This document shows, in pieces, positions 9,191-51,799 of a stretch of DNA of 64,000 bases. This DNA is from Lepidodermella squamata (taxonomy: Eukaryota > Animalia > Gastrotricha), in the NCBI GenBank assembly GCA_047495785.1, contig JBLDXI010000021.1, positions 1,364,001 through 1,428,000 on the forward strand. Reading direction: 5' to 3'. The first letter of the stretch is position 1, and every line of letters begins with the position of its first letter. The notes under the pieces were generated by a model. That model did no database searches and had not been told where the DNA came from. It was given only the letters and a program-made list of their open reading frames with translations. The position numbers and the translations under genes were made by a program.

Positions 9191-12050
9191 CAGCTTGGAA
9201 CATTCGTCACTTAGCTCAGGTAAAAACAACGCCTTGCACACAACGCCTTGGTATGTTCGCTTGAGACAAGAAACAGACGAGAAGCGCTCAACCGCCTCGC
9301 AATGGTCGGGTGAGAGCGTCGTCTCGCAATGCCCGATTTCTAAAATATTTTTGGAATCTTATTTCACTCAAAAATAATTCATAATCCTTTATCTGAGGGC
9401 AGATGAAATAGACCCAAAATGTGCATCCTATTACCTGCTGTAGTGCATCCTATTAAATTTTAAATTCTGCTTTGTTGATAGATTATTTTACTTCAACATT
9501 TACTCGAAGTCGCCTCTTTAGTTATAGCTGATTGGATATTGGATACTGATTGGGAATCGGAAATGGAAAATTGGCGAAATTCTGGCAAAAGATCGCTGCT
9601 ATACTATTGCTGAGTGCTGGCTATTTCGATAATATATTCAACCTGTTATCGCCATTTTTGTTGAAAAAATGTGATGAATTATTCTCTTGCTTTACTTGCT
9701 TTGTTCATTTTCGATTTATTTCGGTGCGTTGAAAATAAAGGTGTACGGTAACGGGTCACGGCAGCAGTCGAGCAGGTCTAGCCCTACACTGGGGTTTCAG
9801 GGCTACAACGTCCTTGTGGCAGGGCCAGAATTCATGGCTCCTGAGCCTGATCAGGTTGCTGAACCTTCAACGGGGCTACTATGAAAGGGCCAGAGAGAAG
9901 GGCTGGTCTAGGGCTACTATGCTGGGCCTATCAATCTCGGGTCATCATAGACCTGAATCACAAAACTTAGCGAATCGGCGAGATAAGAATCAGAAACACG
10001 AAAACCCAGTCGAACGCCGGTGACATTGGTGGAGACGTAAGGGTGAGCTACTGGTCATATCAACGGTGTCACGATGATATCAACGCCAAATTTAAAAAAG
10101 TTCAAACTAATTTTTTTCCGGGTCCAGAAAATGGTGACTCCAAACTGGGGCGTGTCGATAGCGGGGATGCATTTTAAGATCTATTTGCATAATTTCAAAA
10201 GATCCACCTTAATGGTAATTTTTACAACATTTGAATGATGCATGTTCGAATTTTGCACTTTTCTCCTAATTTGGAAGAAGAAATTCTTAGTCTTTACGAT
10301 CATCTATTTGTCGTGGGTTAGGCGCCTAAAATAGAAACAAATGGCGAAAACCTATGCATCTTTGCTTCTGCGCCAAGTCAGTCGCGTGCCAAATCGCTGA
10401 AAAAAACTAAACGACAGATTTTCTTCTCAAAAAAAGCATGAAGCCATTTGCTTTTATTTCTGGCAACCCACCCAACGACTAATTATAGCCTCCTTTCAAC
10501 CTTCTTTATCTCAATCGGGTTTTAAATTACAACTATGGGTTGAAAAATCGTTATAGGATGGGTTGAAAAATTCGTAGGCTTCACACGTCATTTGTTCATT
10601 TAAATCTGCCATGCCTTCAGCAAATTCTTTACTTCTTATTGTAAAAACTGCCACGTCTGGCGAGGGTCGTTATGTGCCACGGCCTTTACGCATTTTTTGG
10701 GTCGGCGGTGCGCATTATTAGGGGGTAATAAAAACATTTGCACGCGCGCACTTGCAAGACACGTTGCTCATTATTACTTCATTCGCTTGTCGTCGACATT
10801 CTTTCATAACATTCAAAAATTACGTTCGCTAGCCAGAAAGCTTTACGTTATTATTTTCCCTATTTTTGCGTTGCCTATGGCGATTGATTAATTTCTGATG
10901 TCTATTTTCAGAATTGTTTTGTGAGTTCATTTAAATTGGCCATTAATAAGATGTGCATGCCGAGGCGCATTAAGAATTCTCTTGGTAATTTCTCCGAAGT
11001 TTAAACCGTCGCATCTTGACTTAGTTTTAGCAGGAAACCCAGCGAATTTTGAGCCGTTTCAAGTTCCGATTACACTACGTCTTTCGCTCTGGTAAGCAGA
11101 GTTGTACTCAAGTTACGAGTTTTTCCTTGCTACTTTTCTTGCCATTCGAAGGTTGAGCGAACTTGGCATTCGATTGGCATTCGATTGTAAGCTTTGAGCT
11201 TTTAATTTTTGTAGTTGACCTATTTTTTGCTTTCAGATGATGCATGTGATTCATTTCCGAGGATCGGCTGGCAAGGCTTGAAAATCGTTGACGCCCCATC
11301 GTGTTTTTGACCGGAACTATGGGAAAGAAGCTGTTGGGCTGGCAAGGCCTCTTCTCATGGTAAGCTATTATCTCATCTGAACGGTTCAATCGACTCGTTC
11401 AACAACTGTTTCATTGCTTTCCGATTTTTAATCAAAGCTTATTTTCCGGCCTAGGTTCCACAGTTATGGCTTTTGCCGAAGGAGGCGGCTTTGCCGCGAA
11501 GTTCGGATGAAGGTTCCTGGCAATGCCTTGTTGATTTGGTCTGGCTCTAATTGGCGATGGACTGGGCAGAGTTGTTGGTGAAATCAGAGCTGGCGATGAA
11601 TACGACCCTGTCAGTTGCGTTGGTTGCGACGGCGGACATGACGGCAACAACAACAACTTGAACCTGATGAGCTGAGCGAGTTCCGCGTTTTGGTCGTACG
11701 CGACTCGGTGGTGAAATGGTGAAAAAGCAAGGACAGTGACGATGAACAGAGCTACGATGGACAAAGAAAGAACAGAATCGAGGTCTAATCTTATCCTTCT
11801 CTATCTCTCTCACCTCTCAAAGTTATTATTTTGACTCGTTACTCGCGCTAATTTATGATCGCTAATCTTCTAATCTATCTAACTCTTGTGATTTGTGCCT
11901 TAATCTCTTATTTGTGACATTGCGACATTGCTCATGTCTGCAGTATTTCCGATCTAAATTTCCAAATAATCAATTTTTATTATGTTTCTCGTGCCTCTGT
12001 CTCTCGTTCACTAATTATGATTTGTTGTGCCTCAATAACTCGATATATAC

Positions 12051-12253
12051 TGTGACCGGCGGTCACTTGGCTGGCACGCGCCCGTCGCTGCACCCGTGCC
12101 AAGGGTCCACCTGTCGCATCCCGCCAACCCGGAGTCGCGTGCCCTCAGGTTATATAAACTGGCCCTATGTGGCCCTGAACGACAGTTATCTAGTTGCTAC
12201 GAATAAAGCTGTTTGGTTGCTATTTTGTGTTAGTTAAACCGGGGACCCTCACA
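12051..12253 (+). repeat. 5' LTR
   Basis: TGTGACC...CCTCACA, containing TATATAAA and AATAAA. Direct repeat of 18630-18832. Confidence 0.97.
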
Positions 12254-12254
12254 C

Positions 12255-12272
12255 TGGCACCGAGACCCGGAA
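12255..12272 (+). other. Primer binding site (tRNA identity unresolved)
   Basis: TGGCACCGAGACCCGGAA starts 1 nt after the 5' LTR; TGG complements the tRNA CCA end. Confidence 0.8.
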
Positions 12273-12343
12273 GTTGGCTGTAATCGTAGCAATTTTTTTT
12301 TCTCTTTACTTGGTTGATTAAGGTTGAAGGTTGATAAAGGTTG

Positions 12344-13411
12344 ATGGCTAGCTTTCAAGGAGCTACGCTGAAAACCCTGCCCACGGAGGATTCGACCATT
12401 CCTCAGGTTGGAAAATTCGTGCTTGGCAGGCAAACGCTCACGGATTTCTTAATTGAAGCCGAGAGTGTGTGGTTGGCGCGCAAGGTCCCGCCTTTGGCGT
12501 GGATAAATGCGCTAAGGTTGGCACTCCCTGGCCAGCTCATGCTGGACATGGACCGCATAATGGTTGACGTCGACCCTCGTACTGCGTCGTACGAGACGGT
12601 CAAAAGAGCGCTGATCAAGGCGGTCGACAAGCCACCCACGAAGGAAGAACTCATCACGAAGGCGGCGACAATCAAGCAAAAGCAGAAGCAGCCGGTTGAC
12701 GAACTGATCCGCGAGGTCAGGTTGTTTGGCGAGAAGTTGGTTGAACTAGATGTGCCGCAAGCGCAAGTCGACGGGCACATGGTCGAGACACTGCGCCGAG
12801 CGCTCGCATGCCAGCGCACGCAAGAGAAACTCGCCCGGAAGGTGGTCGCAGGCACTCTAACGTGGGAAGCCGCGTGTGAGATCGCCAGAAGCCAGGAGAA
12901 GGTCGCTGAGAGCATGTCAGAAGTCAACGCCAGGACGGCGAGGGACGAGGAGTTGGAGAAATTACGCAGCATGGTGACTGACCTGGGGTCGAAACTGCAA
13001 GCCCTGGCAGACATGAAGTCGAAGGACCAGGAGCTGATCGCGTTTCAAGACGTGAAGATCCAACAACTTAGCCAGCTCTTACACGTCGCGCAGCAAACGA
13101 GTCGCCAGCCAATCAATTCGAACGTGGGCGCTTGGGGCGGGCCAAGTCCCAGACCGCAGCCGGAAAGCGCCAACAGGCAGCCACCAAGCACGGCGCCGGG
13201 TAGACCGACAACAAGGAGCGCGAGCAACAACAAGCCGGTCTCGGCAACGCCAAGTCGCAATTTCACAGGTTGTTACGCCTGTCGATATCAAGGTCACGTC
13301 GCGCAATACTGCCCGACCACCAAGGAAGGAGCACCGATGGACTCGTGCTACGGTTGTGGGGAGCCTGGTCACGTTCGTCGTGACTGCCCCAAGCCGAACC
13401 AAAATTTGTGA
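12344..13411 (+). CDS. gag: Gag with two C-terminal CCHC zinc knuckles
   Basis: Open ORF with ATG at 12344, a coiled-coil-like middle, CYACRYQGHVAQYC and CYGCGEPGHVRRDC. Confidence 0.93.
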   Translation: MASFQGATLKTLPTEDSTIPQVGKFVLGRQTLTDFLIEAESVWLARKVPPLAWINALRLALPGQLMLDMDRIMVDVDPRTASYETVKRALIKAVDKPPTKEELITKAATIKQKQKQPVDELIREVRLFGEKLVELDVPQAQVDGHMVETLRRALACQRTQEKLARKVVAGTLTWEAACEIARSQEKVAESMSEVNARTARDEELEKLRSMVTDLGSKLQALADMKSKDQELIAFQDVKIQQLSQLLHVAQQTSRQPINSNVGAWGGPSPRPQPESANRQPPSTAPGRPTTRSASNNKPVSATPSRNFTGCYACRYQGHVAQYCPTTKEGAPMDSCYGCGEPGHVRRDCPKPNQNL

Positions 13412-13445
13412 AGAAGGCCCAGCAAGCCAAGGCGGGCGCTGGACC
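13402..13445 (+). promoter_or_regulatory. Putative -1 ribosomal frameshift signal
   Basis: A AAT TTG heptamer (13402-13408) in gag frame directly before the gag stop. After a 7-nt spacer comes the stem ggcccagc/gctggacc. Pol is in the -1 frame. Confidence 0.65.
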
Positions 13446-16400
13446 GAAGTTGGCGGGTTCAGCGCAGAAGACGGAGGAGAAGAAGGTTGAAGAGGTTGAA
13501 GGTAGAATGAAAGCAGCTGAGGTTGACAATAAGGTTGTAAATAACGGCTGGAGTGACAAATTTCCAAGAAATTTCAGTGGTTGTGTGGTAAGAAAGCTTA
13601 AGGACGGTAAATACGTCTACGCGTTAGGTGACGGCTTCAAGTGCGTTCCTTCGGATACATTCCTGGCAGTAAACGTGCTCATGAAGAACGGTCAGAAAGT
13701 CCTGACGTTGGTAGATTGCGGCTCTACGATGTCTCTGGTTAGCGAGGAGGTGGCAAAGGCGTTCAACTTGTCCGTCACCAAAGCCATCACTTACAAGCTG
13801 ACCACGGCTGACAGTGGCCGTTTGAACACGATGGGTTGCGGAGAGGTGGACTTTCATCTTGGAAATTTGAAGTTCAGCCAAAACGTTCAGGTAGTTAAAA
13901 ATCTCAGCTGCGGGTTGTTGCTGGGCCTTGATTTTCTCATCAGGAATCGGGCAATGGTTGATTTCCATGAAGGCAGGATCATTTTTCAGAACCGTCATAG
14001 CAGCAGCTGGAGCGTTCAGATGCCTAAGGTTGAGAAACACGGAAACGTCATGACCGTGCTCAATGCAGAAATAGGGTGGGAGCAACCGGCTCTACCTTAC
14101 TTGCGCAAAAGGTCGGAAGAATGGTTCCAGGATTGCGAAGACGACGAGCCACGAGAAGAAGGTGAAGATGATAGCGCACTCTTTCCACCAGACGGGTCGA
14201 AGGTTGAAGAATTGAGCGCGGTTGAAGTAGGTAGCGAGATATCGGACGAGGCCAAGGCAAAGCTGTTCAAGCTGATTGGGGACTACAGCGACTGTTTCTC
14301 GTTCGACGGCAAGGTGAAAGAGACCAAGTCGGCAACGTTTTCGATCAAGATAACGAACCCAGCAGCAAAACCGGTCAAGGCCGAGCCTCGAAGGCGGTCC
14401 GAGAAAGACCAAGAATTCATCGCCAAGAAGTTCAAGCAACTGGAAGAACAAGGAATTGTCGTCAAAACAAACACACCCTGGATAAGCGAGGTTGTACTCG
14501 AAAAGACGAAGGATCCGGAGAATCCTAGGGTAGCAATCGATTTGACGCCGATCAACGATTTGACGGAAGATGAGTCTCAAGAAATACCGCTGATGGCCGA
14601 CTTGTTGGAAAAAGCCGCTGGACACAAGTTCTACTGCGTACTAGATATGCAAAGCGCTTACTGGGCCATTCCGGTCGACAAAGAATCGCAAAAGTACCTC
14701 GGGGTAAGGACCAGAGACGGCCACTATGCGTTTACGCGCATGCCTTTCGGGTTGAAAAATGCCGGCACAGTCTATTGCCGAATGATCAGCAAGGTTCTGG
14801 ACGGGTTGACTTACAAGATCCTGGTCTATTACATGGACGATGTTGTTATCTGGGGTGACACCGAGGAAGAAATGCTCGCGAGGTTGAAGGAGACGCTTGA
14901 CAGATTTCGCAGCCACGACCTGCAGATCAAACCGTCAAAGTGTAAGTTGTTTCAGCGCAAAATCAAGTTCATCGGGCACGAAATCTCTGAGGATGGTATC
15001 TGGGCGCTGCCGAAGCATCTCGAAGCCATTAGAAACTATGAGTTACCGACAACGCCGAAGAAAATGCGCGCTTTTCTAGGATTGGCGAGCTTCCTCAGAG
15101 GCTTCACGGCCAACATCACTGAGATGACCGCCCCTCTGCGGGACGCGGCGAATGAAAGTGGTAAACAGATCAGGTGGACAGCAGAAAGGTTGAATGCGTT
15201 CAATAACGTCAAGGAAGCGTTTCTGAAAGCTCCAGTTCTGGGCGTTCCAGATCTCAACAAACCGTTTGTCGTTTACACGGACGCTTCAAACATTGGCATC
15301 GGCGCCCTATTGTGTCAGGAGCAGGAGGGAAAGCTAAGGTTGATTTCGTCGGCGAGTCGGTCTCTCGACAAGGCCGAACGCCGCTATTCGACGATTCATC
15401 GCGAAGCATTGGCCATCTATTGGGCGGTCACGAAGAGATTCAAGGTCTATCTGCATGATCGTTTCGAGCTGCGAACGGATCATCGGCCACTAACCTGGCT
15501 AATGTCGTTCAAAGACCCTCCCCCGAAACTCTGGCGGTGGATACACGAACTTCAGCAGTTCAAATTCGACGCAGTTTACGTACCAGGCACGAAGCAATAC
15601 GCCGATGCCCTCACGAGATGCTTTCCGGAAAAGCTGGAAGAAGAAAGCCACGGTTGTTGTAACATGATTTCCAAGGAGTGCTTCCAAATCGACATGAAAG
15701 AATTGCGGAGTGAGCAGTTGGTTGACGACGAAATCGGACCCGCAATAAGGGCGAAGTCGGGTGGTCAAAAGGTAGAAAGTGGCGACTGGCGCACGCTTTT
15801 GGTGGCCCGAGAGGACAACGACTTGGTTGAGGACGCTGCAAGGGAAGGCGTCTGGTGCAAAAAGTTGGCAACGGGTGAGTTGGCCATTGTTGTACCAAAG
15901 AAATTGCGCCCTCTGATTTTGTACCATTCGCACGACTCACCCAACGGTGGACACGTCGGATACCGCAAGGCTATCAGACGAATTCGGGATCAGTTTTGGT
16001 GGCCAGGAATGTTGTCTGACGTCAAAACGCACTGCCAAGGTTGCGCGACATGCCAACTCAGGAAGGCGAGTACGGTAGCGACGAAAGGCCCGCTCAAGTC
16101 ACTGGATGCGAAATCCCCGTTTGAAATGATTTCGATTGATTTCGTCGGACCGCTACCCCGAACACGGCGTGGCAACAGGTGGATACTTACAGTGGTCGAC
16201 CATTACACGAAGTGGGCGCAAGCTTATCCCACACGTAATCGAACAGCGGAGACGGTTGCCAGCTGCTTGAAGAAGTTCTTCGCCGATCATGGTGTGTGCG
16301 AGAGGTTGTTGTCGGATCGAGGGGCCGAGTTCGAATCGGACCTGATCGACAAACTGTGTGACGCGTACGCGATCAGAAAAGCACGTACGTCAGCATACAC

Positions 16401-17220
16401 GCCATGGGCGAACGGTGTGTGCGAGCGCTTCAACCGCACAATCGGGGACATGTTGGCGACAATGGCGGTTAAGTGGCGCAAGGACTGGGACGACAACATC
16501 TCGCAGGCGCTCAGCGCCTACAGGTCGACGCCGCACGAGGCGACGGGCAAAACACCTTACATGATGGTGTACGGCCGCGAAATGCCACAGCCTCATTACT
16601 GGTTGGCTGGATCTGGCTCAGTGGCGACTAGCAGCCCTAACCCGGTGGACTATGTTCAGACGCTGCAAGAACAGCTACGACAAGTATGGGACGAAGCAAC
16701 GTTGGCACTTCAGGCGGCTAGGTTGAAGCGGGAACAGCACTACAACAAGGCCATTGCCGATCCAAAACGTTTCGCGGTGGGCGACAAAGTCCGCAGGTTG
16801 ATTGATGTCCGAGAAAACGGAAAATGGGCGGACAGATTCGAAGGGCCATTCGAAATCGTGCGCGTCCCGGAAGAAGGCAACCACGTCTGGCTTATCGACA
16901 AGGCCGGTAACGAAGTTTCGGTAAATGTCCGCAAGCTAATCCACTGGCGTGAACGGCCGAGCAACGTGTGTGTCTTCGGAGAAACGGTTGCACCACCACA
17001 ACAGGACCAAATGCAGCCTGCGGCGACGCATCAGGTAGAAAATCGCCAACTGGCATTGGTCCCGGTCAACCAGGTCGACAACGCAGAGGTGCCGGTAGCA
17101 GTCGAAACCCGAGGTAGACGAACTCGCAGTCGGCCAGCGTGGATGGACAACGGCCAGTGGGTCCTAAGTGTGCTGAGTCAAGTAGCGAAGGTGTTCTTTC
17201 AAGATGAAGTGCCGAAATAA
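13408..17220 (+). CDS. pol: Pol polyprotein (protease, RT, RNase H, integrase)
   Basis: LVDCGS protease, MPFGLKNA and YMDD RT, YTDAS RNase H, HHCC plus IDFVGP/SDRG/ERFNRT integrase, GPF motif. 1270 codons uninterrupted. Confidence 0.97.
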   Translation: MKKAQQAKAGAGPKLAGSAQKTEEKKVEEVEGRMKAAEVDNKVVNNGWSDKFPRNFSGCVVRKLKDGKYVYALGDGFKCVPSDTFLAVNVLMKNGQKVLTLVDCGSTMSLVSEEVAKAFNLSVTKAITYKLTTADSGRLNTMGCGEVDFHLGNLKFSQNVQVVKNLSCGLLLGLDFLIRNRAMVDFHEGRIIFQNRHSSSWSVQMPKVEKHGNVMTVLNAEIGWEQPALPYLRKRSEEWFQDCEDDEPREEGEDDSALFPPDGSKVEELSAVEVGSEISDEAKAKLFKLIGDYSDCFSFDGKVKETKSATFSIKITNPAAKPVKAEPRRRSEKDQEFIAKKFKQLEEQGIVVKTNTPWISEVVLEKTKDPENPRVAIDLTPINDLTEDESQEIPLMADLLEKAAGHKFYCVLDMQSAYWAIPVDKESQKYLGVRTRDGHYAFTRMPFGLKNAGTVYCRMISKVLDGLTYKILVYYMDDVVIWGDTEEEMLARLKETLDRFRSHDLQIKPSKCKLFQRKIKFIGHEISEDGIWALPKHLEAIRNYELPTTPKKMRAFLGLASFLRGFTANITEMTAPLRDAANESGKQIRWTAERLNAFNNVKEAFLKAPVLGVPDLNKPFVVYTDASNIGIGALLCQEQEGKLRLISSASRSLDKAERRYSTIHREALAIYWAVTKRFKVYLHDRFELRTDHRPLTWLMSFKDPPPKLWRWIHELQQFKFDAVYVPGTKQYADALTRCFPEKLEEESHGCCNMISKECFQIDMKELRSEQLVDDEIGPAIRAKSGGQKVESGDWRTLLVAREDNDLVEDAAREGVWCKKLATGELAIVVPKKLRPLILYHSHDSPNGGHVGYRKAIRRIRDQFWWPGMLSDVKTHCQGCATCQLRKASTVATKGPLKSLDAKSPFEMISIDFVGPLPRTRRGNRWILTVVDHYTKWAQAYPTRNRTAETVASCLKKFFADHGVCERLLSDRGAEFESDLIDKLCDAYAIRKARTSAYTPWANGVCERFNRTIGDMLATMAVKWRKDWDDNISQALSAYRSTPHEATGKTPYMMVYGREMPQPHYWLAGSGSVATSSPNPVDYVQTLQEQLRQVWDEATLALQAARLKREQHYNKAIADPKRFAVGDKVRRLIDVRENGKWADRFEGPFEIVRVPEEGNHVWLIDKAGNEVSVNVRKLIHWRERPSNVCVFGETVAPPQQDQMQPAATHQVENRQLALVPVNQVDNAEVPVAVETRGRRTRSRPAWMDNGQWVLSVLSQVAKVFFQDEVPK

Positions 17221-17804
17221 GGTTGAGAGGTTGTTTATGTGGAAAGATGGTTGTGGAAAGGTGGTTTTTCCTGCGTGAAGAAGTCGGTTTCCTTTGGTGG
17301 CCAGTTGGGGCCAGGGCTCGCTATCTCAGCGGGACATGAACTTACCGACTAACATTTCTTTGTCCATTTACGTTTTCATTGTCATCATGCTTCCTTTTTG
17401 GTTGACCTAATCAACAGTTCACGGGATCGCCCTGAACACTTTACGCTATCGATGGCATTAAATTTTTACGCGTTGGTTGTGCCGTAGCAATGTTGTTCGG
17501 CGTAATTAGTCGTTTTAAAAGTTGTGATATAGCTGTTGTGTGTGTGTGTGGATCCGGTGGTATTACAATTCGAGGTTGTTTACAACATTTTCCAACGAAT
17601 CAAATCGATTTTGAGCGTACGTTACATCAATGGCGGCCCGGCAAGTGTTAGTAAACAGGCCGTGAAGCGCGCGAATAGCAGAAACGCGCGCCTCAGGTTG
17701 CATAACATTCGCAGGATAGGCGCGTGGCGGTGTCGAGTATATTAAACACGGAAAATCAAGTGATTGGCAATCGCTACTCGTCTGAATTAACTACTGCCCC
17801 AGCA

Positions 17805-18326
17805 ATGAACGCGAAGGTAGGCCGGCTCACCGAGAAACTAACAAACGTTATCGCCGACAACATAGGTGAAGTTTCGGCGTTCGACCTCAGCGAGGTTTTT
17901 GAAAATCTCTCAGCGAAACTCGCAGAGAAAGCTAAGTCAATACAAGCCAAGGTTGAAGAAAAGAGAGCCGCAAAGCCGGAAGTCGCGTCGGTAATCTATC
18001 AAATTAAAGTCGAAAGAAAACCAGCGACCAAGCGTCTCGGGCCGAAGCAAGGGTCAAGCCGTCAAGCTGCGCTGGATCGAGCGAGCAAGTGCCGCTTCTG
18101 TGGAGCAGGGTGGCACCGCCCGATATTCTGTCGAGTCGCCGCCAAGACCACCAGGTGCGACTTCTGCAAGGAGAAGGGGCACTTCAGCTGCAACTGCCCA
18201 AAGAAGATATGCAGAGGGTGCGGCGAGCGTGGCCACATCGTCAACAATTGCCCCAAGGACGCTAACGCCGGCAAGTGTTTCAGATGCGGCAGAACGGGCC
18301 ACTTCAAACGTGAATGTCGAGGTTGA
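17805..18326 (+). CDS. ORF3 of the LTR element: basic protein with four CCHC zinc knuckles
   Basis: CRFCGAGWHRPIFC, CDFCKEKGHFSCNC, CRGCGERGHIVNNC and CFRCGRTGHFKREC. First ATG is 17805 (frame open from 17724). Lies between pol and the PPT. Confidence 0.85.
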   Translation: MNAKVGRLTEKLTNVIADNIGEVSAFDLSEVFENLSAKLAEKAKSIQAKVEEKRAAKPEVASVIYQIKVERKPATKRLGPKQGSSRQAALDRASKCRFCGAGWHRPIFCRVAAKTTRCDFCKEKGHFSCNCPKKICRGCGERGHIVNNCPKDANAGKCFRCGRTGHFKRECRG

Positions 18327-18616
18327 ACGGTCGCAACATTTCTGGTCCTGACGCCATCGCCATCGTCGAGGTAGAATTGCCGTAACACTTCTGGTACGCT
18401 ATAATTGGAAGTTGATTTTTTCCGTGTTGGTATTGCAGTAGGCGTCTTATTCGTTGTAATATAGTGTTGTACAATTTGGTGATATAACCGTGTTGTGAGA
18501 ATATTGTAATATAATTTGGCTGTTTTTTCCGATGATTTGTTCTCACTCGGTTTTTTTTTCCTGCTGATGCTTCTTTGTCAGGTGAATGGGCGAAAATTCG
18601 TAAACGAATTTTGATT

Positions 18617-18629
18617 GGGGTGGGGGGTG
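18617..18629 (+). other. Polypurine tract
   Basis: GGGGTGGGGGGTG immediately precedes the 3' LTR. Confidence 0.8.
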
Positions 18630-18832
18630 TGTGACCGGCGGTCACTTGGCTGGCACGCGCCCGTCGCTGCACCCGTGCCAAGGGACCACCTGTCGCATCC
18701 CGCCAACCCGGAGTCGCGTGCCCTCAGGTTATATAAACTGGCCCTATGTGGCCCTGAACGACAGTTATCTAGTTGCTACGAATAAAGCTGTTTGGTTGCT
18801 ATTTTGTGTTAGTTAAACCGGGGACCCTCACA
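18630..18832 (+). repeat. 3' LTR
   Basis: Identical to the 5' LTR except A18685 versus T12106. Confidence 0.97.
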
Positions 18833-19357
18833 TATACTTAACAATAAATAAAAAGAATGCAACTGCAACTGGACGTGTTTTCGGCCAGGGTACCGGGGTA
18901 AAACGGGGGTAACCGAGATCCGGGAAAAATCTGGAGCAAAAGTCCTGTCACAGGCCTAGACTAGGTCTGTACCCTGCTGGGCCCTTTCTGGCTAGGCCTA
19001 CGGCACGGGAAATCTTGGCCCTGCGGTAGGCCCGGTAGGTAAAATGCCGCTGGACCTAACCCAGGCCTAAACCCTCCCGACTGGATCGTTTTCTACGATC
19101 GAAGAATTCCCAAAAAGCGCGAGAAAGAATTATAGAAAGGATAGGCGAAGAAGCTGACTTTCTCTTTTCTCTTCAAGAGTCCAAGAACGCAAGATTAGCA
19201 ATCGCAGCTAATGGCAATTTATAGCCCTTGAACCGAAGATAGTAATTTGGAATGCAACCGCTCCGCAGTTGTAAACACCGCAACAAATGTGGAAAACTCA
19301 TTTTTCAAGGGGTGTCTGAAGATTGTCTGGAGTTAAAGCTTTGGTTCTATGCCAATT

Positions 19358-19480
19358 GAGCAAACGAAAATTGAGCAACGAAAATTGAGCAAGGGCTTTT
19401 GAGCAACGAAATGAGAGCAAACGTTAGAGCAAAACGACTTTAGAGCAAAATGAGATAAGAGCAAAACGACACGAGAGAAA
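19358..19480 (+). repeat. Degenerate minisatellite with a GAGCAA core (about 8-9 units of 12-16 bp)
   Basis: gagcaaacgaaaatt gagcaacgaaaatt gagcaagggctttt gagcaacgaaatga gagcaaacgtta gagcaaaacgacttta ... Confidence 0.7.
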
Positions 19481-20101
19481 ATTTAATAATTAATTTTAGC
19501 TCTTATTTCGATGGTTTTACGCTATAATAGACCGATCGCGTACACGCTCAAAAAACTCTGCGGCATACATAAAAGTATGCAGGGTTACCATAGATAAAAA
19601 AATACTGAAGATATGACACTCGCGCGTGCTTCCTGTTATGCTTTTTTGCAGTCAAATACACAGTATTGCAATTATTTCAAAAATTAATTAAAAATAAACA
19701 TCGTCCTCAAAAAATTACGGGAAAATTACAGCTTACTACTTGATTTTTTTTGACACCCGCTGATATAATTTGTATGCAGCGATTCCTCATATAACCTAGG
19801 GCTATAATTTTGGGTTTTGTTACTATTTTTAGCCCTGTTGCCATGGCAACGCTTGGAAATCCGGCGTGCGACTTGTGTTTTTTTCCTAAATTAATTTTTT
19901 TTTCTGATCAATCGTTCGCCCTGGAACTATGAACTATGGTAAATGTATTGGAAACCAAATCTCTGATTATATTGTTGCCACGAATCTGTATCCGAATCGA
20001 AATGAATTCATGCTAGTCAGCGTCGTCTTCACCAGCAATCAGTGTTGCTCAGTGTTTTACTCTGTGTTGTATGCTGCTATGACTGATGCTGGTTACATAT
20101 A

Positions 20102-33145: not shown

Positions 33146-33725
33146 GATTTCTAGGGTTAAGAAGATATGCGGTTTGATACATATGCAGAATGGCATTTGG
33201 TAAAATTTAATACGACACTATTTGCTTGTTCAAGTAATTTTGTCACTGATTTTTGTTATTAACGGGTCAACAGTTACTATACTCGGTAATTATAACACTG
33301 ATTTCGCGCAAATGCGAAAAATGTGCAATGATTCGTTTAATTTGAATGGACAGAGACGCGTGGTCTTTTCCGCATTACGCATCGCGTGGCCTGTACTGTG
33401 AATCTCCAATCTGTGCACCTTGATTATGTGTCGTCTTAAATTATTCACATTCTGCACCCTGGCGTTTGTTGTGCGCGCCTACGCCTGTTTACACCTTTAT
33501 TATTACCGCCATCATTATTGTTATCTTGTCAATCAATCGCCGTTAGAAATCTGCCGCTCTTTTCGCGCTTTATCCGACGCGCGGCGATTTGTTATCACAA
33601 GAAACTATATCTCTCCCCGCGCGTCGAAATGATCATTCAGCCTCACGCGCCTCGAATTAAAGGCGTTGCTTTCACCTTCATATTATAATTTCTTTTTCTT
33701 TAAAGTAGGCAGGCTTTTTAATTCT

Positions 33726-35515
33726 ATGTCCGAGTATCCGAGCGCATTTGCGGCTCCTAAACTTGAAGAATGTGACATTTCGAGACATCCCTTGTTTCCA
33801 GTCATCAAATTTCTGCTCGAAAAATGTGACTCGGCTACGGAAAAGTTTGGCAACGCTCATTTCCCAATCAATTCGATAGATGCTGAAATCGAAGCGATGG
33901 TGCGAAAATGCGCCGGCGAGAGTGGGTCAATCACATTTCCTGACGTGGAAACGCACAATCTGGTGATCTTAACGCTACAAGTTTTACGAATTCACATCCT
34001 CGAGTTGGAAAGAGTCGGCGAGCTCAGCGTTGATTTCTCTACTCGTTATATCAACTGCCTTAAGCAAAAAATGCAAAATGAGCTGTTGTCGTCAGATATT
34101 CTTCAAGATGGGAATGAAGACATTTCTAATGTAAGCGAGTTATCCGAATTTTTTTCAGATTTATTTTTGTATTTTTCTTATAGACTTCCGGGGATAGTAT
34201 GTTTGAGTCGTATAATCAGCATCGGCAAACTTCTCCCGAAGATCCTTCTTCATCGACGCCGCTGTTTTCGTCCCATCCTAGCGGTTCTCTGCATTACAAC
34301 AATTACTGCGACCCAAATAATCCTAACTTGACCCCTCAGTACCCGTACGGCGGCAGGTCTAGTTCATCCAGCCGGCGGCATTCTGTTGGCTCAGCCGCTA
34401 ATTACGATTTGGATGGAAATAACCGGAAACGCGGCGTTTTACCTAAACAAGTAAGCTCACAATTTTTCCTTGTTGCGAGCTTCAAGGTTAATTTTCTAGG
34501 CAACGCAAGTTATGCGCCAATGGCTTTTCCAACACCTGATGCATCCTTACCCGAAAGAATCAGAAAAGCAAATCATGGCTTCGCAAACTGGCCTGTCATT
34601 GTTGCAAGTGAATAATTGGTAGGTCTCTCAATTTTTTATCTAGGTTCCTAGTTCAGGACTGTTTGACGATTAAGCCCATGTCCGAAGTTGAATTATTTGT
34701 CGTAGAATTGAGAATTCCAATCGTGAGATATATACCTGTTCGGGCTATCTGATTATCGATACGTCGGCTAAAATCGATATCTTTAATCAGCCCTGATCAT
34801 TGAATCGAAACGTTTCGAAAATACTACAGCTCAAATCGAGAAAGTTCAAGCTTTTAGTCACGCGATGTCCGCCCTAATCTCTTATTTTCCTATGCCTTTT
34901 GTCGTGTTTGTTATTCTAATCAAGGAAGAATTAGGACTGGCGTTTTGTCCCCAAAAAAATTGATTGATTTCACGACTAAATTACACAAATTGGATCTTTT
35001 CTTGTCTCAGGTTCATTAATGCCCGGCGAAGAGTGCTTCAGCCAATTATGGATCGCTCAAATCCCCCGCCGAACGGGACATCAAGTTCGGGTGGTAAAGA
35101 CACCTCGAGCGGTCCTTCGAAAGCGAAACACAAAAAATCGACGAGCCAGAGCGGCAGTTCGACGACGAATGGCGCCGCTAATCGTTTCTGGCCCGAACAG
35201 TTGCGAAATTCCAGCACGACTACGGTGCCATCAGCCGACAGCACGGCTTCCTCAGCTTCATCGAGCGGGTCTCAAATTTGCCCGGATTTGCAGCAGCAGC
35301 AACAACAGCATTTACAACAGCTGGGCCATTTGCAGCAAATGCAGCCGAATCTTCACCCGCAACATCATCACTTGTTAGCCCATCACGCCCTGTCAGCCTT
35401 GCTACCCGGAATGGGGTTCGGAGGTACCAATGAAAATCACCTTCTTCCCCTCGGCATGAAGGACGAACACGCGTGGATGATGGCGGCAGCGGCGAGTGAT
35501 TCGATGGCGCACTGA
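33726..35515 (+). CDS. PKNOX: TALE homeobox transcription factor, PKNOX/Prep class
   Basis: Exons 33726-34130, 34184-34450, 34500-34618 and 35011-35515. MEINOX motif HPLFP..LLEKC and homeodomain [26 protein letters not shown]...[18 protein letters not shown]. Confidence 0.92.
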
Positions 35516-39124: not shown

Positions 39125-41319
39125 TTAGTCTTGAATCGAGACGACTTGAATCTCGTTGGCATTATCAACAAGTGGCGGTATTATTTTGACGTTATCGAAT
39201 TGCGCGAGGCTGAAATCTCGAGTGCCCATGCCAACGAACCCGTTTTTAACGTCCCTGGCCTCGTTTTTCAACTGGCAATTCGAGATAACTTTAGCGTTGT
39301 TCACCAACAACGTAGCTTGCGGTCCAGACAGAGAAATGCCCAGGTTAAACCAGCCATTTTTACCGCCTGGTAGAGAATCAAATGAAAAGTTGGCCTTGCA
39401 CGTCGGGTTTAGCGCCATCAAACGTTCGGTAATGTAAACAGTATTGTCCTTAGGCGAGGCCCAGGCGAAAACACCGGCTGTTGTGAAAGTCATGCAGCCG
39501 CCGTGTTGAATTCTAGCACCAATATACGCAGAATCGGTGGCGTTAACCGCCGGGAACATCATATCTGACGAGTAGTAAATATCTGACCAGTTGTAATTTC
39601 CGAAAACGGCAAGGGGCCGTAAATTCGGAATCGTGCACCACGTAACCGGCGGTTGAAGTAGCATTTGCTGCAACACTCGGCCGTGCTTCGCATCAGCAGC
39701 TTGCTGGACCTCGAAAACGCCAACTTGCTGCTGAATGTACCGGCCCTCGGCATCAATCGGGGTCGATTCGAAATCGTCCGAATACGGGTACGGGAAGTCT
39801 TTAGACGGCAACGGGCCGTTGAGATCATCGCCCTCAAGCGACCCCTTCCGACCAGGGGCAACCGTGGTGAGGGTGATCAACTGATTAGCAGCAACTGCGA
39901 CTCTGAAAGTCAAATCCGTACCGACTTGAATCGCGGGTTTCGAGACAAACATCTCGCCCGTTGACAAATCTGAAAGTCTGACGTAAAGTTTTGGCGGTGA
40001 TTGAAATTTCCAGTTAGCCAATGAAAACGCAAGGGTTTGATTCGTAATAGTCGGGTAGGGATTAATCGCAGGCCTAACGCAGGCTGATTGGTAGTAATCG
40101 ATTGTTTCAATGACAACAGTGAAGAATTGTTGATCGGGTGAAACCAGGGTGACATAACTACCGCCACCCCCTGGCAACATGCCAACACCACTTCCGTGGG
40201 CAAGGTACACCCAGCCGGGTTGCGTGAATTGGGTAGTATGAGCTGTCAACCAAACTGGGTCGTCAATGTTGTACCAACCACCCCACGGCTGGTTCGCAGT
40301 CAATAGGCCAGTCCTCGGGTAGTCCAAATTGTCGTAAAATGCCGAAATAATATTGAAAATATACGTCGTTGTGAAGAGGCCCGTCACGTAATTTCTGTTC
40401 AAAATCCGAGCAATGCAGCCATTTTTTGTCGTCCTAGCATCCGTACTGTCGTCCTCGCTTGAAACAAGGGCTTGAGGCAAGTTTTGAGCTCGAGGCGGCG
40501 CGTAACCTCCCGGGTAATGGATCGCAATTTTCGAGATCATCTTAGCTAGATCGGCGTCTGTGGTTAAATAATCGATGATTTCCCAGTGGTTATCGCCGGC
40601 TACGATTTCGGTTTTCAAATTATTCTCCTGGATGCGATGGTACAGTGCTTTCATGTAAGGGACATGTTCTGGTTTTTCATTCCAAATACCAACGTAATCG
40701 ATATCGAGATTCCAGTACTTTTTAGCGCCTTTGATCCAGCTTACAATGCTAGAAAAATAAAGAGAAAATAGCTATAATTAACGATATTAAGGTGGGACGT
40801 ACTAATCAGCAGTTTTATTCAAGCTGGCGAATGGAATGAAATGAGACCCATTACCCAGCCAGCCTGGGAAGCACCACGGCAAGCCATACAGCTTGATATT
40901 CGGATTTCGTTTCTTCGCCTCGGACATCATCCAAAATTCGTAGCCGCGCTGGAAGTTGCCTTCAGTCTCCCATTCGTAGTGGCGATGGGAACTCTCGACC
41001 CCTTGCGTTGTCTGGTCATCTCCACCGATTTCGACCTTGAACAATTGGAGCGAAGCGCCGAAACGCGGCTTGAATAAATAGTCGAGAATTTCGGAGCGTT
41101 GCGGCTCAGGATAAAGGGGCAGCATTCTAGCCACAGCCTTAAAATTCACATTTTAAATATGAAAATCAAGAAATATTTAATACCTACCCCTCCACCGCTG
41201 ATGGCGCCTACTCCTTCGAAAACTCTACCACGGCTCGATAGATCCACCTTAAAGGTTGTTGCATCGATAAATCGAGCAGTAGCACATATAGCAAATATAC
41301 TTAAAAGTAACTGCCGCAT
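39125..41319 (-). CDS. GALC: Galactocerebrosidase (GH59), three exons
   Basis: [72 protein letters not shown]. Confidence 0.95.
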
Positions 41320-43410: not shown

Positions 43411-46127
43411 TTACTTTTCGAGGTTTTGCAGGATGTCGCTTGACAGTTTTTTCGACAATTCTCGAGCAGCACGCCATGATGAGAAAATCCCGCCAAACTG
43501 CCGAACCCTCATCTCATACGCTTGATCGTCGACCTCTGCAACAATGGCGACCAACATCGGCACTCCGCCATCTCGTTCCAACATCGGAATGTATTTTTCG
43601 GGGTTGGAAGTCGTTAGATTGGCCAGCGCCCAAATCGCCCACAGCTGGACAACTGGGCAATGAGAGCACGGCACTAGTCGCAAAATCGGACCAAACGATC
43701 GATAGTTAATCTGGCGAGATGAGTCCAACTTCCAACGCTCGGTTATCACACGGTAAATTCGCTCGGAACAAACATCGGGCTCGATATTGGCTTCAATGAA
43801 GCCAGAATATCCATCACACATCATATGGGCAAGTATTCCGATCGTATTGTACGAAACCTCGAGGCATTCGTCCGGGCTATCGATGAATCTATCCAGAATT
43901 GCGAGACATTCTTTCGCCCTCAGCTGGTCACGCAATTCGTGAACCTCGGCGACATTGCCGATTAGCCCGGTCATATTTCGGTACAAATCAATATTCTGAA
44001 AGTTCTCGTAACACTGAGCAAACGCTGTTAGCCCACCGGCCTGCAAAAATCGCTCGCAGTTTGCCGGCGTTTCGTCGGTAACGTTCCAAAGAATCGAAAA
44101 ACAACATTCCAAAATCTCGCCGGAATGCCTCGTCGCAACCAGCCGAGATACGACTTCAAGTAAGCACTCAACCACGCCCAGTTCCCCTAGCAAAGCCTTG
44201 CAGTCCATTTCAATATTGCAGGCTAGACCATTGAGAACGTGGAGAAAATATCGCTCGACAAAGGCGTCGAGTACCCGCGTTAACATAGTGCAGATAAGCC
44301 GAACGAAGCGACGGCAAACAAATAAAAAGTGCTCAGCCTCGGCGAAAACGTGTAAAATCAACACGCCGTTTCGAAGAACAGTGACATCGCGCCAATGGTC
44401 TTCTAATACGGTTAAAATGATCCGGATGATATTTTTCCGTAAAACTGTAGAGATGATATCTCGATCCCGACATTCTCGCACGACGTAGAACAAACTAGCG
44501 GTTGCTGGGATAAGGGTGAACAGGTTCGCCTTGTTTTTGAGCAGAATATCAAGAAGAAGTGAAAGAATTTCACAAGTTGCAACGGTCCCTTCGCGACGAA
44601 TCTACAACATATTACTTTAATGAAATTCCCAATGCAATAACCGAATGTCTCACTTTCAAAAACAGAGCATTCAGTGCTTTGTTGACAAGAATAGGCCTTT
44701 TCTGATACCTCCTTAGGCAAGAAACCAATTGATTTTCGTCCGCTAAACCAGAAACCTAAAAATATATATTTCAATTTTTGCACCACAAGAAAATTCAAAA
44801 ACAACCTCTGCAGCGGATAGGGTGAGATCGAAACACGGATCCGATGCACAGTCCAACAAGCCGAGAAAATCCATTGGGTGGTTATGTTTGAGATACAGCC
44901 AAATACTTTTAAACGATTCTTCAACCTTCGGCTCGACATTCGACGTGCCAGAAGTGAAATGAGGGGATCTTGAAGTTCCTTTCGAGTCATTATACAGCAA
45001 ATTCGTGCCAGATATGTCTAGTGAAGTAAGAAGAGGCAGGTTTTCCAGCAAAACAAGCAAACTGCCATCCGCATCTTCGTACATCACGGGGTTGTCTTCA
45101 GCAACAGAAATATCGAGATGTCTAAAAAGAATTCGGGAAGGTATAATCAATACAAATCATTAGTTAAATTTACCTTAAATTTTTCAATTGCTTCAATATG
45201 TCGAAGGTAGCTCTGCAGCTTTCCATCCTGACGTTATGCAGGTTTAAAAATGTCAAACGAGGTACAAATTCGATGCAGTCGATAAAATCGATATCAATTT
45301 CACTGTTCTCAAGAGCGAGATGAGTAAGATTCGGACAGCGTGAAATCAGTGCAGCCACAAAGGACTGGGCTTCTCCGCCGAGAATCGTTACAGAAACTCG
45401 TTCCAGCTTCGGACAGTCGAATAAATAATCCTCACCAAATCTAAGCTGCATTCGCTCTATATCTTCATCTTCACCTGAAAAGAAAATGGTGAATTCGCAA
45501 ATAACAGATTCTAGACACATACTAAGCCCAGGTGGATTGAAGTAGTTTTTACGGAAACGGCGATGTTCGATTACATTGACTGATGCGAAGTTGATAACAG
45601 AACCGATGACAAGAGACTTCAGGTCCCCGCAATATTGGTTAATTGCGTGGAGAGTGTTGGTATTCAAACCGGTAGTTTCGCTTATATCCAAGTGTTTTAG
45701 CGGATGCTGAACAATCCAGAAAACCTCGCAATCTTTCAGGTGGCCTCTCAGTACGGCAGAGTATAGCTTTGTCGCTGATGTATCCTGAAATACAAGTCAA
45801 TTGAATAACAAATTGAATAAGAAATGTATAAAATATTACTCTAAACGCTTCCAAGATTTTGTGAACATCCAATTTACGTCCAGTTTCTTCTTCGAACCTC
45901 TGTTGAAAAAGAGTATCCGTGCAATGTTGCAATATTGACTGGCAGACAGAAACATCTAGGGCTGAACAATCCATAGAATAAGCACAAGAGTTTTCAAGAG
46001 GACTGTAAAACTTACATCTTCTAAGGGTAATGATTTCAGTCGAGTCGACGCAAAGAAACACATATTTGTGGTTAAGCAAAGTTCTGGTTGCAAGTTCTCG
46101 AAGCGTGAATGACGTGTACGCATTCAT
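43411..46127 (-). CDS. ZER1: ZER1/ZYG-11 family CUL2 substrate receptor (LRR + ARM)
   Basis: SLDISGTNL, WNVTDETPANCERF, RNMTGLIGNVAEV, EVSYN, INYRSFGPILRL, WALANLT across GT-AG exons. Confidence 0.88.
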
Positions 46128-48097: not shown

Positions 48098-51000
48098 ATG
48101 AAAAACACCTTGACGCCGCGAATGGCGATTCCGATAATGGAATCCCTACCGTGGCTCGGTTTTGTGTTGCTGTTATTGATGTCTTCGGCGACAGCAGCAC
48201 CCATTGGCTCCACACAAAACAGCAAATCTATCGACCCTGTTGATCCTAAATACGCCGAGCTGGTTATGCAAGCGCAATGCCAAGCTCAATGCCTCGTTAA
48301 GGTAGCTTTGAAATTCTACAAAAAACTTACGTTAATCACGTTTTATTTAGACAGGGGAGCTTACTCGCTCGATCGACATTTTACTATTACCGATCTACAC
48401 TTGCACGAACGAGAAATGCCGGCAATGCTCAGCGCCATGCGACACTGACATCATCAACCTCGTTTCGCCTGCGACCTGCAAAGCTTCGAAATGCGTGAGT
48501 TTTCTGCTAAAATTGAGAAAATAGCGTCAAACCGTTTCTTCAACAGTCGCCGAGGGATAAATTGTGCCACGAAAGTTGCCAGCTGAGATTTCGATTGAAG
48601 CAGCAGCATGTGGAAAGCCAACAACTACCTGTTGCGGCAAATGCCCTAAATTTACAGGTTCAACCGCCGGAAATGCTGTGCGTTGACGATTCAGGCTCGC
48701 CAACGGCTGCGGCAAACTACGACTACGACGCTCAGTCTCTCAATGCGTTAATGGGAAAACCCAGTCGCCAACCGGCACATCACACCCAGAGAACAGGTCG
48801 TTCTCTCACCCTCCGCTGGTTGGCTCGATTCGACGACGGGGATCAAAATAATTCAACGTCGAAACTGTCAACCCAAGGTCAACCGCCGGCTGTTGTTTCT
48901 GTCGTCACGATGCGGCGGGTTAACAGCAAAAAGACGACAATAATAGGAAAGGCAAGCTATACAAAATATTTTGTTTGCAATTTTTAAACCTTTTTTGTCT
49001 AGAATGTTGGGCAGGTAATTACGCTGACCTATTTAAAGCCTGGGCAGTCGTACATTTTCGAAGTAACTTCGGTTACGGCCGACGGTATTCTGCTGCCTCC
49101 AGTATCTAGCCAACCAATCGAAATCCCAGCAAGTCCGTGGCAAGGCGACGAAAAAGTTTCTCTGTTCGCGCCAAACACTGGCAGAATCGTCACCAACTAC
49201 TTTCTTGGCACAGCTTCGAAGCCCAGTCTTGGTGTATACGTCGACTGGAAATCCGATCCGAAAATTCAAAGCTGCTACTACGAAGTTTTCGTGCTGAAGA
49301 ACGAGGTTGAAAACGCTGTCAATGATGGTTCGAACTCGCCACCGTCCAGCAGTTACCATCACGTGAGGGCCCGAACCAAAGAAATGCACAACGTCCTGCT
49401 TGTCGACGGCCTCGATTTCAACGCCAACTACACCGTTAGAGTTTTCACATCGGACCGTCTTTATCGATATCAGAGCGAGTCTTCTTTGGACCTTCATCTC
49501 GTTACGCCGTCGTGTCTAGAGGCAACGGGGCATAATTACACCCTATGCGGGCCTGAGCCGCCAGTAAACGCGACAGGCGAATTTTTCTGCTACCAAGAGC
49601 CTGTAATTGTCGCGAATTCAACTTCGAATTCAACAGCTGGCAACTCGACTGAAATCGCTGAAGTTCGATCGCGGCTTTCTCTTCTCGTCAACTGGACGAT
49701 GTTTCTCGAGGGTCAAGCCGAACCTAGCTCGGATTTCGGCTTCGAAATCAACGTTGCGAATGACCCGATTCCTGAATTAATTGGCGCGGTTGAAATGCCG
49801 AGCGACTGGAAAACGTTCACGGTTCAAAACACGTCCTCGTTGATAATAGACTATGTTTTGCCGAACCAGCTGTACTTCGTCGAAATTCGGACATTACTGG
49901 CGGGCAAACGCAGTCGCGCTTTGATTCTACGCCTCACATCTCCCGGTTCCAAGTCGTCGCTGTGCTCAACTAGCGAATCTATGGGCCAATCTAGCGACTA
50001 CGTCGATGCAGCTGTTTCGACTATTGGAGAATGGGCCTTGGGACGGGGAATCCAGAAGCCGATTCAGCGATCCAATGTCGCCAGAGAGTTGACGATATCG
50101 TTCACGGTGCTTCTTGTTTTCGCCATTGTCTTCATCGGTCTAGCTTCCTATTGGCTCAGACGAGCTCGCCTTGTGAAACAGGCCAAACACATAGTCGAGG
50201 TATGTTTAGTATAGCTGTCACCTGTATTCAGGAAATTAATTTTATTTTAATTAGCAGACTGTGCCGATGAAATGCTCTGCCCTCTACGAGATGACCGCGG
50301 CTGTCAATCAAAAGTTCGATCGTTTCGAAGTAACGTGGACCGAACTGACTCTACTGCCTCACGTCTTGGGTGAAGGCGCATTCGGTAAAGTGATTCATGG
50401 CCAGTTATTGGCACCCGAACTGACAAACTCCGATGGCGCCGTTGACGTAGCCGTTAAAATGTTGCGAGACAACGCCACCGACGAGGAACGAGTCAATTTA
50501 CTAGCAGAAATCGAAACGATGAAACGTGTTCGGCAGGTTTGCGGTGAACATCCCAATGTTGTCTCTCTCGTCGCCTGCGTTACCCGAAACGGCTTGTGCA
50601 CCCAACCGGCTTTAGTCATGGACCTATGCCCGTTCGGCTCGCTGCGTGACTATCTGCGCCAACTTCGCGGGAAAGGCCCTCGAGAAATCGCGAGTCTTTG
50701 CGGTGGGAAGGCGAATGCTTTGTTCAAAATGCCGCACAATTACCCAGCCATGCGTGTCACCGCAACTGCGCAATCAATCGATACCGCTCAGACTATTGAT
50801 GGCATCTCGCAGGCTGAACGAATGTTGCTGCTGACCTTGGAGAAGCAAGGCATCGGACCACAGATTCATAGACCAAAGTCTGGTTCTTGCTCGACAACAT
50901 GCACAATGGACGTTGGACCTGATCAAAATCCGCCGCTTTTCATGCTTCTGTTGTCCTTTGCTCGTCAAATCGCTGCTGGTATGGAACACCTTGCCATTCA

Positions 51001-51799
51001 CAAATTCGTCCACCGTGACCTGGCGACGCGAAACGTTCTAGTCTACGATTTCGATCAAGTCAAAATAAGCGATTTCGGGTTGTCGCGTGACATCTATGAA
51101 GATCAGAAGTACCAGAAAAGCACGGCAGGTCGGTTGCCAATCAAATGGATGGCGCCTGAGGCGATTATCGATCAAACCTACACGACAGCGAGCGATGTTT
51201 GGTCTTATGGAATTGTTCTATGGGAATTGGTCACCCTAGGTGCGACGCCTTATTGCCTTGTCCTGAATCAAGACTTGCCGAGACTGTTACGAGGTGGCCA
51301 TCGCCTTGAACGGCCTGATAACTGCCCGGATGATTTGTACGCCCTAATGTCGGCTTGTTGGGCCATGCAGCCTGATTCTCGGCCTAGCTTCACCACCCTC
51401 CTCGAACAGGTCGAATCGCTGCAGTCGAAGGCCGAGCGAAACCTGGCTACAAGTGTCTACGAACTCGAAGATTACGTGACGATGAAAACGCGACTTGCAA
51501 GCATCGGCAGTGGTCGGTTGGCCAGCGATGATACGATGCGGCCGCCTACCCTGCGCGGTTTAGACAAGTCTAAGCGATACTTTTTCGCCGATGACGAAGA
51601 CTCGACTACGCCGAAAGATGCGGAAAAGACCGCACCTCGGCACGTGACCTCGTTGACTGCGCGTGCTCCTAGCAACGCCTACACGCGCCTCGTGGCCCCG
51701 AACGGCGAGGTCAGCGATTCTGACGATGCGGATGATTCGGCTTTCACCGTTCCGGCAAGTGACGATTCGTGCCTCGTGAAATCACCAGCCATGGTTTAA
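48098..51799 (+). CDS. Receptor tyrosine kinase with Cys-rich N-terminus, FN3-like ectodomain and split kinase (Torso/RET-like)
   Basis: Signal peptide, AQCQAQCL and CHESC motifs, TM segment near 50095-50155, then LGEGAFGKV, VAVKML, HRDLATRN, DFGLSRDIY, GRLPIKWMAPE, with a long kinase insert. Confidence 0.85.

Follow-up and report, generated by a model that had tools for sequence, protein, structure and literature searches.

A CCHC knuckle-array gene in the env slot of a gastrotrich Ty3/Gypsy element, probably encoding an undescribed RNA-binding helper protein

A Ty3/Gypsy retrotransposon in the genome of the gastrotrich Lepidodermella squamata carries a third open reading frame (ORF3) downstream of pol, the product of which ends in four CCHC zinc knuckles. 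This raises the question of whether ORF3 is a genuine gene of the element and, if so, what its protein would do. Extra genes set “complex” retroviruses apart from “simple” retrotransposons. Among Gypsy elements, a role is known for very few extra genes other than env, the main studied case being CERV of the element Cer1. The DNA analysed here, referred to as the window, is a stretch of 64,000 nucleotides (assembly GCA_047495785.1, contig JBLDXI010000021.1, positions 1,364,001 to 1,428,000 of the forward strand), and coordinates given without a contig name refer to it.

The element occupies positions 12051-18832 of the + strand and is complete, with long terminal repeats (LTRs), a target-site duplication (TSD), a primer-binding site (PBS), a polypurine tract (PPT), gag, pol and ORF3. 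Its features are as follows:

12046-12050, + strand: 5′ copy of the TSD, TATAC, a pentamer repeated at 18833-18837
12051-12253, + strand: 5′ LTR of 203 bp, TG...CA, with a TATA-like box and AATAAA; direct repeat with 18630-18832
12255-12270, + strand: PBS-like 16-mer that begins TGG, 1 base past the 5′ LTR
12312-12344, + strand: four GGTTGA in tandem in the leader, past the PBS and up to the gag ATG, which the fourth overlaps
12344-13411, + strand: gag, 355 aa from its ATG, intact, with two CCHC knuckles at 13271-13312 and 13346-13387
13408-17220, + strand: pol, 1270 codons, intact, in the -1 frame relative to gag, identified with Pfam
17221-17804, + strand: spacer of 584 nt between pol and ORF3, with stops in all three frames
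17805-18326, + strand: ORF3 (173 aa and a stop codon), located after the pol stop (17220) and before the PPT
18090-18317, + strand: four-knuckle array of ORF3 (K1 18090-18131, K2 18156-18197, K3 18210-18251, K4 18276-18317)
18617-18629, + strand: PPT, abutting the 3′ LTR and conserved in the relative described below at L001 261-285 and L002 2441-2465
18630-18832, + strand: 3′ LTR, direct repeat of the 5′ LTR
18833-18837, + strand: 3′ copy of the TSD, TATAC, directly after the 3′ LTR

The element is intact and young, having been inserted recently. The two LTRs are 99.5% identical, with 1 mismatch over 203 bp, and gag, pol and ORF3 are all free of stops and frameshifts, with gag leading into pol through the usual -1 frame change. 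The Pfam domains of pol run in the order protease, RT, RNase H and integrase, without a chromodomain. The PBS-like 16-mer matches the site of the relative (L001 527-542) at 15 of 16 bases. The 3′ UTR resembles nothing in the window or the relative except at the PPT. Likewise, the 584-nt spacer has no similarity to that of the relative, which is 116 nt long, or to anything elsewhere in the window. It may represent either an internal promoter or an old insertion.

Within the 64-kb window there is no second copy of the element and no solo LTR, Rfam gave no match, and no tRNA gene is present. About 540 nt downstream of the Gypsy element, at 19371-19481, is a run of short, degenerate tandem repeats whose periods are 14-16 nt. 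Further along, on the - strand, a 758-aa ORF (58099-60375) has a weak match to Transposase_21 (tnp2; E 4e-4), and an array of 27-nt tandem repeats lies ~1.2 kb from it at 61569-61716. The two may represent a DNA transposon with subterminal repeats. Host exons of a Meis/PKNOX homeobox gene, galactocerebrosidase, ZER1 and a tyrosine kinase reside at 33666-34331, 39125-40654, 43411-44493 and 50261-51799, respectively. The exons of these four genes lie within 20 kb of each other, which suggests a compact invertebrate genome.

The open frame of ORF3 spans 17724-18326 on the + strand, corresponding to 200 codons from a GTG, with the first ATG at 17805 and the stop at 18324-18326. An earlier sequence-only reading of this DNA had proposed an intact sense ORF of 173 aa from this ATG, in the slot between pol and the PPT, and both the coordinates and the open frame are confirmed. 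It had also described four tandem knuckles of the form CX2CX4HX4C. These are exact by regular expression and are the only domain that Pfam recognizes in the protein (zf-CCHC, E 7e-9). They occupy residues 96-171, are separated by linkers of 8, 4 and 8 residues, and are followed by a tail of 2 residues. All are canonical knuckles of the nucleocapsid (NC) type, with the aromatic residues and Gly-His positions. When all six frames of the 64 kb were searched with the same expression, only six knuckles were recovered, four in ORF3 and two in gag; a chance origin of the ORF3 knuckles is therefore excluded.

No transmembrane (TM) or signal segment is present in ORF3, as the sequence-only reading had also held, the highest Kyte-Doolittle mean over 19 residues (KD19) being 0.61. 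The protein has no RRM, cold-shock domain or RGG box, zf-CCHC being its sole Pfam match. The N-terminal half had been described as helical and basic. The helical part of this description agrees with the AlphaFold (AF2) model, in which helices span residues 3-22 and 28-56 at modest pLDDT; the basic part holds only in part, as residues 1-60 are charge-neutral (pI 6.2) and it is the Arg/Lys-rich linker of residues 61-94 that is basic (pI 11.1). The knuckle array has a pI of 9.6. The model, which was built on a two-sequence alignment, has a mean pLDDT of 66, with values of 70-83 in the knuckles, and residues ~59-94 are disordered. The ORF3 product is thus predicted to be small and basic, with a module of two helices at its N-terminus that leads through a disordered linker rich in Arg and Lys to the four knuckles at its C-terminus.

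Comparisons with known proteins lead back to the knuckles. Foldseek searches with the model gave knuckle-only or insignificant matches. The best matches in a PDB sequence search were retroviral Gag/NC chains, via the knuckles only, and Air2 (2lli, E 2e-5) and Lin28 also matched in this way. When ORF3 was aligned with the gag of its own element using hhalign, only knuckles 2-3 aligned to the gag NC (39 columns, probability 94%), with 33-36% identity by BLASTP, and no CA-like region was detected. As the profile comparison matches knuckles 2-3 only, ORF3 is not a copy of gag. Nor is it a displaced Gag NC, a point that had been made from the window alone and that now extends to the relative, since gag retains its two knuckles in both elements.

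A word-index protein search with pol yielded one close relative, P0001, with 58% identity over 97% of the query; all subsequent matches are at ≤34% identity. P0001 sits on an ENA metagenome scaffold (L001), together with gag and a third ORF, P0040, of 189 aa with CCHC matches. The sample label suggests that this scaffold derives from an environmental metagenome. Contig L002 is 100% identical to L001 and circularly permuted, and the order pol, ORF3, PPT, LTR, PBS and gag can be read from it directly. Compared with L001, positions 1-6716 of L002 show the permutation pol-ORF3-LTR-gag-pol, a pattern that a collapsed multi-copy element would produce, as would tandem or one-LTR-circle forms. The stretch at L001 6631-7150 diverges from the element. 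Four contigs, each from a different assembly, encode the P0040 protein without any change. Its ORF is intact, follows pol and precedes the PPT/LTR, and from the coordinates it has the same frame with respect to pol as ORF3 of the window.

The two elements have diverged widely, with amino-acid identities of 58-61% for pol, 34% for gag and 31% for ORF3, and synonymous sites between them are saturated (pS 0.79-0.83). The third ORFs nonetheless share a common build: ~95-110 non-knuckle residues, then a four-knuckle array with 8-4-8 linkers, then a tail of 2-3 residues. An ungapped alignment of their knuckle halves spans 78 residues at 50% identity, against ~15% for the N-terminal halves. The linker of P0040 is an Arg-Ser repeat, which the ORF3 of the window lacks. 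The first 27 codons of P0040 (L001 5800-5880) encode a moderately hydrophobic helix with a KD19 of 1.74, compared with 0.61 in the window protein.

The saturation of synonymous sites means that dN/dS cannot be computed for whole genes. For the knuckle half of ORF3 it is ~0.25, with dS near saturation. Both ORFs, of 173 and 189 codons, have stayed open at saturated divergence with their knuckles ungapped, which argues for selection on the protein, the comparison resting on n=2 elements (the window element and L001/L002). Thus, the absence or neutral decay of ORF3 that had been contemplated for sister elements was not seen, as the sole relative found keeps it intact with the same architecture. 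Its presence in both elements is likewise at odds with a recent passive capture, their synonymous sites being saturated. The claim that the element truly possesses ORF3 as an additional gene, and that this gene is not env, is borne out by its retention in the relative and by the lack of any env match.

Searches for further kin returned mostly generic arrays. A two-sequence ORF3 profile was run with HMMER against 1.84 billion representative proteins and gave 2710 matches, among which P0040 is the only full-length one; the remainder match via the knuckles only. Pfam analysis of 20 of the best or longest-aligned matches revealed generic proteins with multiple knuckles, some of which also carry RNase T, IBR, VWA or GIY-YIG domains. 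The 8-4-8 knuckle spacing occurs in none of the best 150 of the 2710 matches. When the window ORF3 was compared directly by BLASTP, P0040 scored 94 bits and the generic CCHC arrays among these 150, which reach 40% identity, scored ≤75 bits. This margin is modest, so the homology of ORF3 and P0040 leans on synteny and knuckle spacing.

Word-index protein searches with ORF3 alone or with the two-sequence profile gave nothing beyond P0040, a blank that means little because the two ORF3s share no exact 5-residue word. The window ORF3 protein is not on record by exact look-up. Scans of JGI metagenomes with ORF3 and with pol gave no further member, and a scan of IMG/VR gave one generic CCHC match (L003). 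Two small proteins of loosely similar build were set aside: P0100 lies on a 2.2-kb contig with no pol nearby, and P0184 is the sole listed gene on its 1.6 kb contig. Six other Gypsy contigs recovered through pol matches (L004-L009) carry no third CCHC ORF. In two of these, L004 and L007 (the contigs of P0002 and P0004), the Pfam integrase domain precedes RT, and the gag region of L007 has a SCAN domain. From their domain order, these two would belong to a different Gypsy arrangement, with the integrase upstream of RT, and they served only as controls for the motif described below.

The sequence-only reading had not recognized ORF3 as a described Gypsy gene, and neither protein databases nor the searchable literature yielded an account of a Gypsy ORF3 built from a CCHC array. 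A review of extra ORFs in plant elements leaves zinc knuckles unmentioned. Extra genes in the env slot of LTR elements are already known, and the knuckle-array version is a variant of these.

A second feature of the element concerns its RNA. The heptamer AGGTTGA occurs 16 times in the sense orientation of the window element and never in antisense, where a first-order Markov model predicts 0.65 occurrences and the maximum in 2000 simulations is 5. Relaxed to GGTNGA, the motif has a sense to antisense ratio of 48:9 in the window element, mostly with N=T, and of 36:7 in L001, mostly with N=C or A. Host DNA of the window (57 kb) has a ratio of 44:57, with no strand bias. The sense density is 7.1/kb in the window element and 5.7/kb in L001, against 0-2.1/kb in the six Gypsy contigs lacking ORF3. 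Overall, the dispersed motif is ~30-fold over-represented, as AGGTTGA in the window element and as GGTCGAA/GGTAGAA in the relative (L001 286-6630). In the window element, the leader and gag both contain sites, pol has them in two codon phases, and others fall at the pol stop and across the stop codon of ORF3, for example:

12312-12344, + strand: motif sites
13485-13526, + strand: motif sites
17220-17234, + strand: motif sites
18320-18326, + strand: motif site

The excess in coding regions survives the shuffling of synonymous codons (z 4.6-7.3), the observed count being reached in 0 of 500 shuffles. Among 26 motif sites in pol, 8 have the motif at the aligned position of L001, 7 of them letter-identical, against a background of 8% for aligned 6-mers. 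Selection on the motif at the nucleotide level in the ORF3-bearing lineage is indicated by the strand bias, the excess over shuffled codons and the partial conservation of position. In predicted accessibility the motif exceeds composition-matched 6-mers (p 0.0015 and 0.014) but does not exceed positions overall, which lends it weak support. The reader of the motif could be ORF3, the Gag NC or a host factor. That ORF3 itself is a sequence-specific reader of GGUNGA, recognizing its own RNA for export or packaging through ~35-50 sense sites in coding and non-coding regions, is a tentative and rather doubtful proposal.

Judged from these comparisons, ORF3 is very probably a real and conserved accessory gene, and its product is probably an RNA-binding helper protein that has so far gone undescribed. 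The preferred reading, to which a probability of roughly 0.55 is given, is that it is a selected third gene of a distinct, rarely sampled Ty3/Gypsy lineage, and that its product is a trans-acting RNA-binding adaptor. The predicted build of the protein, in which a helical module of an oligomerization type is followed by a basic or Arg-Ser linker and a knuckle array, fits such an adaptor. Binding to single-stranded RNA that contains G is a property of the CCHC knuckles in retroviral NC, Lin28 and CNBP.

In the genomic RNA, ~5.5 kb and many AUGs precede the ORF3 ATG, and the spacer before it has stops in all frames; translation of ORF3 would therefore need a subgenomic RNA. The likeliest route is predicted to be splicing that joins a donor in the leader, or at the beginning of gag, to an acceptor just 5′ of the ORF3 ATG, in the manner of errantivirus env and CERV. 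The candidate acceptor in the window is the AG at 17801-17802, 2 nt before the ATG, and that in L001 is located 33 nt before it. Both follow a pyrimidine-rich run, neither is separated from the ORF3 ATG by another ATG, and both ORF3 ATGs have an A at -3. The two leaders contain several weak GT candidate donors, with 6 of 9 matches to a generic splice-site consensus.

Once translated, ORF3 would bind single-stranded RNA through its knuckles and act in trans on the unspliced RNA of its own element. The preferred role is that of an adaptor resembling Rev, CERV or an SR protein, which would stabilize and export the full-length RNA or else pass it to translation or packaging. The dispersed sense-strand GGUNGA motif would be the candidate recognition mark.

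The main rival to this adaptor is a second NC-like chaperone supplied in trans, which would coat or anneal the genomic RNA for dimerization, packaging, primer placement or strand transfer, in addition to the two-knuckle NC of Gag, rather than regulate export or expression. The knuckles are of the canonical NC type, knuckles 2-3 resemble the gag NC of the element itself (hhalign 94%; BLASTP 33-36%), and the best PDB sequence matches, through the knuckles only, are retroviral Gag/NC. The four tandem GGTTGA also lie in the leader, the usual place of packaging signals. However, gag already carries an NC in both elements, and a separate gene would provide neither a fixed stoichiometry with the capsid nor an obvious way into particles. 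ORF3 also has no CA-like region. In the relative, the Arg-Ser linker is more suggestive of nuclear RNA processing than of particle assembly. Weighed together, these points make an NC-like chaperone unlikely, if less so than the other alternatives.

It is also conceivable, and improbable, that ORF3 counters host silencing or restriction by sequestering small RNAs or their precursors, or by shielding the element RNA from a restriction factor. Such a role has a generic plausibility for a basic single-stranded RNA-binding protein of a young, intact transposon, and the fast-evolving N-terminal half (15% identity) is of the kind seen in host-parasite conflict. No similarity to a known silencing suppressor was found, however, with Pfam, PDB, HMMER or Foldseek searches, and the conserved knuckle spacing and element-wide sense motif are better suited to recognition of self RNA.

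Passive capture of a functionless CCHC array from a host gene or another transposon is more improbable still. Such arrays are abundant, as the 2710 database matches through knuckles attest, and generic ones reach up to 40% identity. Yet no donor stands out among them, and the capture would have to predate a split at which synonymous sites are now saturated, while both ORFs remain open, their knuckles are ungapped and the dN/dS of the knuckle half is ~0.25. Finally, a degenerate or re-purposed env remnant is barely credible, as the slot between pol and the PPT speaks for it and nothing else does, whereas the protein has no signal peptide, TM segment or env-family match, and its whole C-terminal half consists of knuckles. 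One reservation is the moderately hydrophobic N-terminal helix of the relative (KD19 1.74), which is not conserved in the window ORF3 (0.61).

A conserved accessory gene built on an NC-type knuckle array would give an LTR element a new means of managing its RNA. The co-occurring motif, strand-specific and partly conserved in position, provides a concrete candidate ligand and thereby makes the marking of unspliced RNA addressable from descriptive data alone. If the GGUNGA-ORF3 system proved true, it would be an independent invention of regulation of the complex-retrovirus type in an invertebrate Gypsy lineage, with a dispersed motif in place of the single structured response element. Annotation pipelines that expect env or nothing 3′ of pol would miss or mislabel such a gene.

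Several known systems may be compared with ORF3. The env gene of errantiviruses, which are insect endogenous retroviruses of the Gypsy type, occupies the same slot and is translated from a spliced RNA, its own ATG following closely on the acceptor. ORF3 differs in having no signal peptide, TM anchor or env homology, being a soluble basic protein. With the NC of retroviral and LTR-element Gag it shares CX2CX4HX4C knuckles in a basic context. The Gag NC is cut from the Gag C-terminus, downstream of the capsid domain, and has one to three knuckles, whereas ORF3 is encoded on its own, 4.4 kb further downstream, has four knuckles and shows no gag match outside them.

Among cellular proteins, CNBP/ZNF9, Air1/Air2, Lin28 and SRSF7/9G8 likewise contain knuckles, of a type that binds single-stranded G-containing RNA. 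CNBP has seven knuckles and an RGG box, Air1/Air2 of the TRAMP complex have five knuckles along with poly(A)-polymerase-binding motifs, and SRSF7 combines a knuckle with an Arg-Ser domain. The relative's ORF3, with its knuckles and Arg-Ser repeat, is similar in composition to SRSF7. ORF3 is unlike CNBP in having four knuckles and no RGG, and the database matches are generic arrays with other spacings. It also differs from the cellular CCHC-array proteins in being encoded by a transposon, and no specific relationship to them past the generic knuckle was found. Of the comparisons that the sequence-only reading had put forward, that with CNBP shows no specific relationship, and those with Air1/2 and the Gag NC gave matches through the knuckles only.

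The likeness to Rev and Rex of complex retroviruses is a proposed functional one only, that of a small basic RNA-binder made from a spliced RNA and directed at an unspliced target. ORF3 has no sequence or fold relationship to either protein. Rev and Rex recognize one structured RNA element, whereas the candidate mark of ORF3 is a short motif spread along the whole RNA.

The remaining comparison is with CERV of the Caenorhabditis elegans Gypsy element Cer1, a non-env ORF in the env slot (PMC10309623). CERV is translated from a subgenomic mRNA that arises by splicing, and nuclear export of the unspliced genomic RNA depends on this protein (PMC10309623). It is a lineage-restricted, fast-evolving protein with no homologues outside nematodes (PMC10309623). 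Its 517 aa include N-terminal exons in common with gag, and the paper reports no zinc knuckles in it (PMC10309623). Compared by description only, ORF3 is unlike CERV in that it has 173 aa, starts at its own ATG and is half made up of knuckles. The slot is the same, as confirmed in the window and in L001/L002, and by analogy CERV may be the best guide to how ORF3 works.
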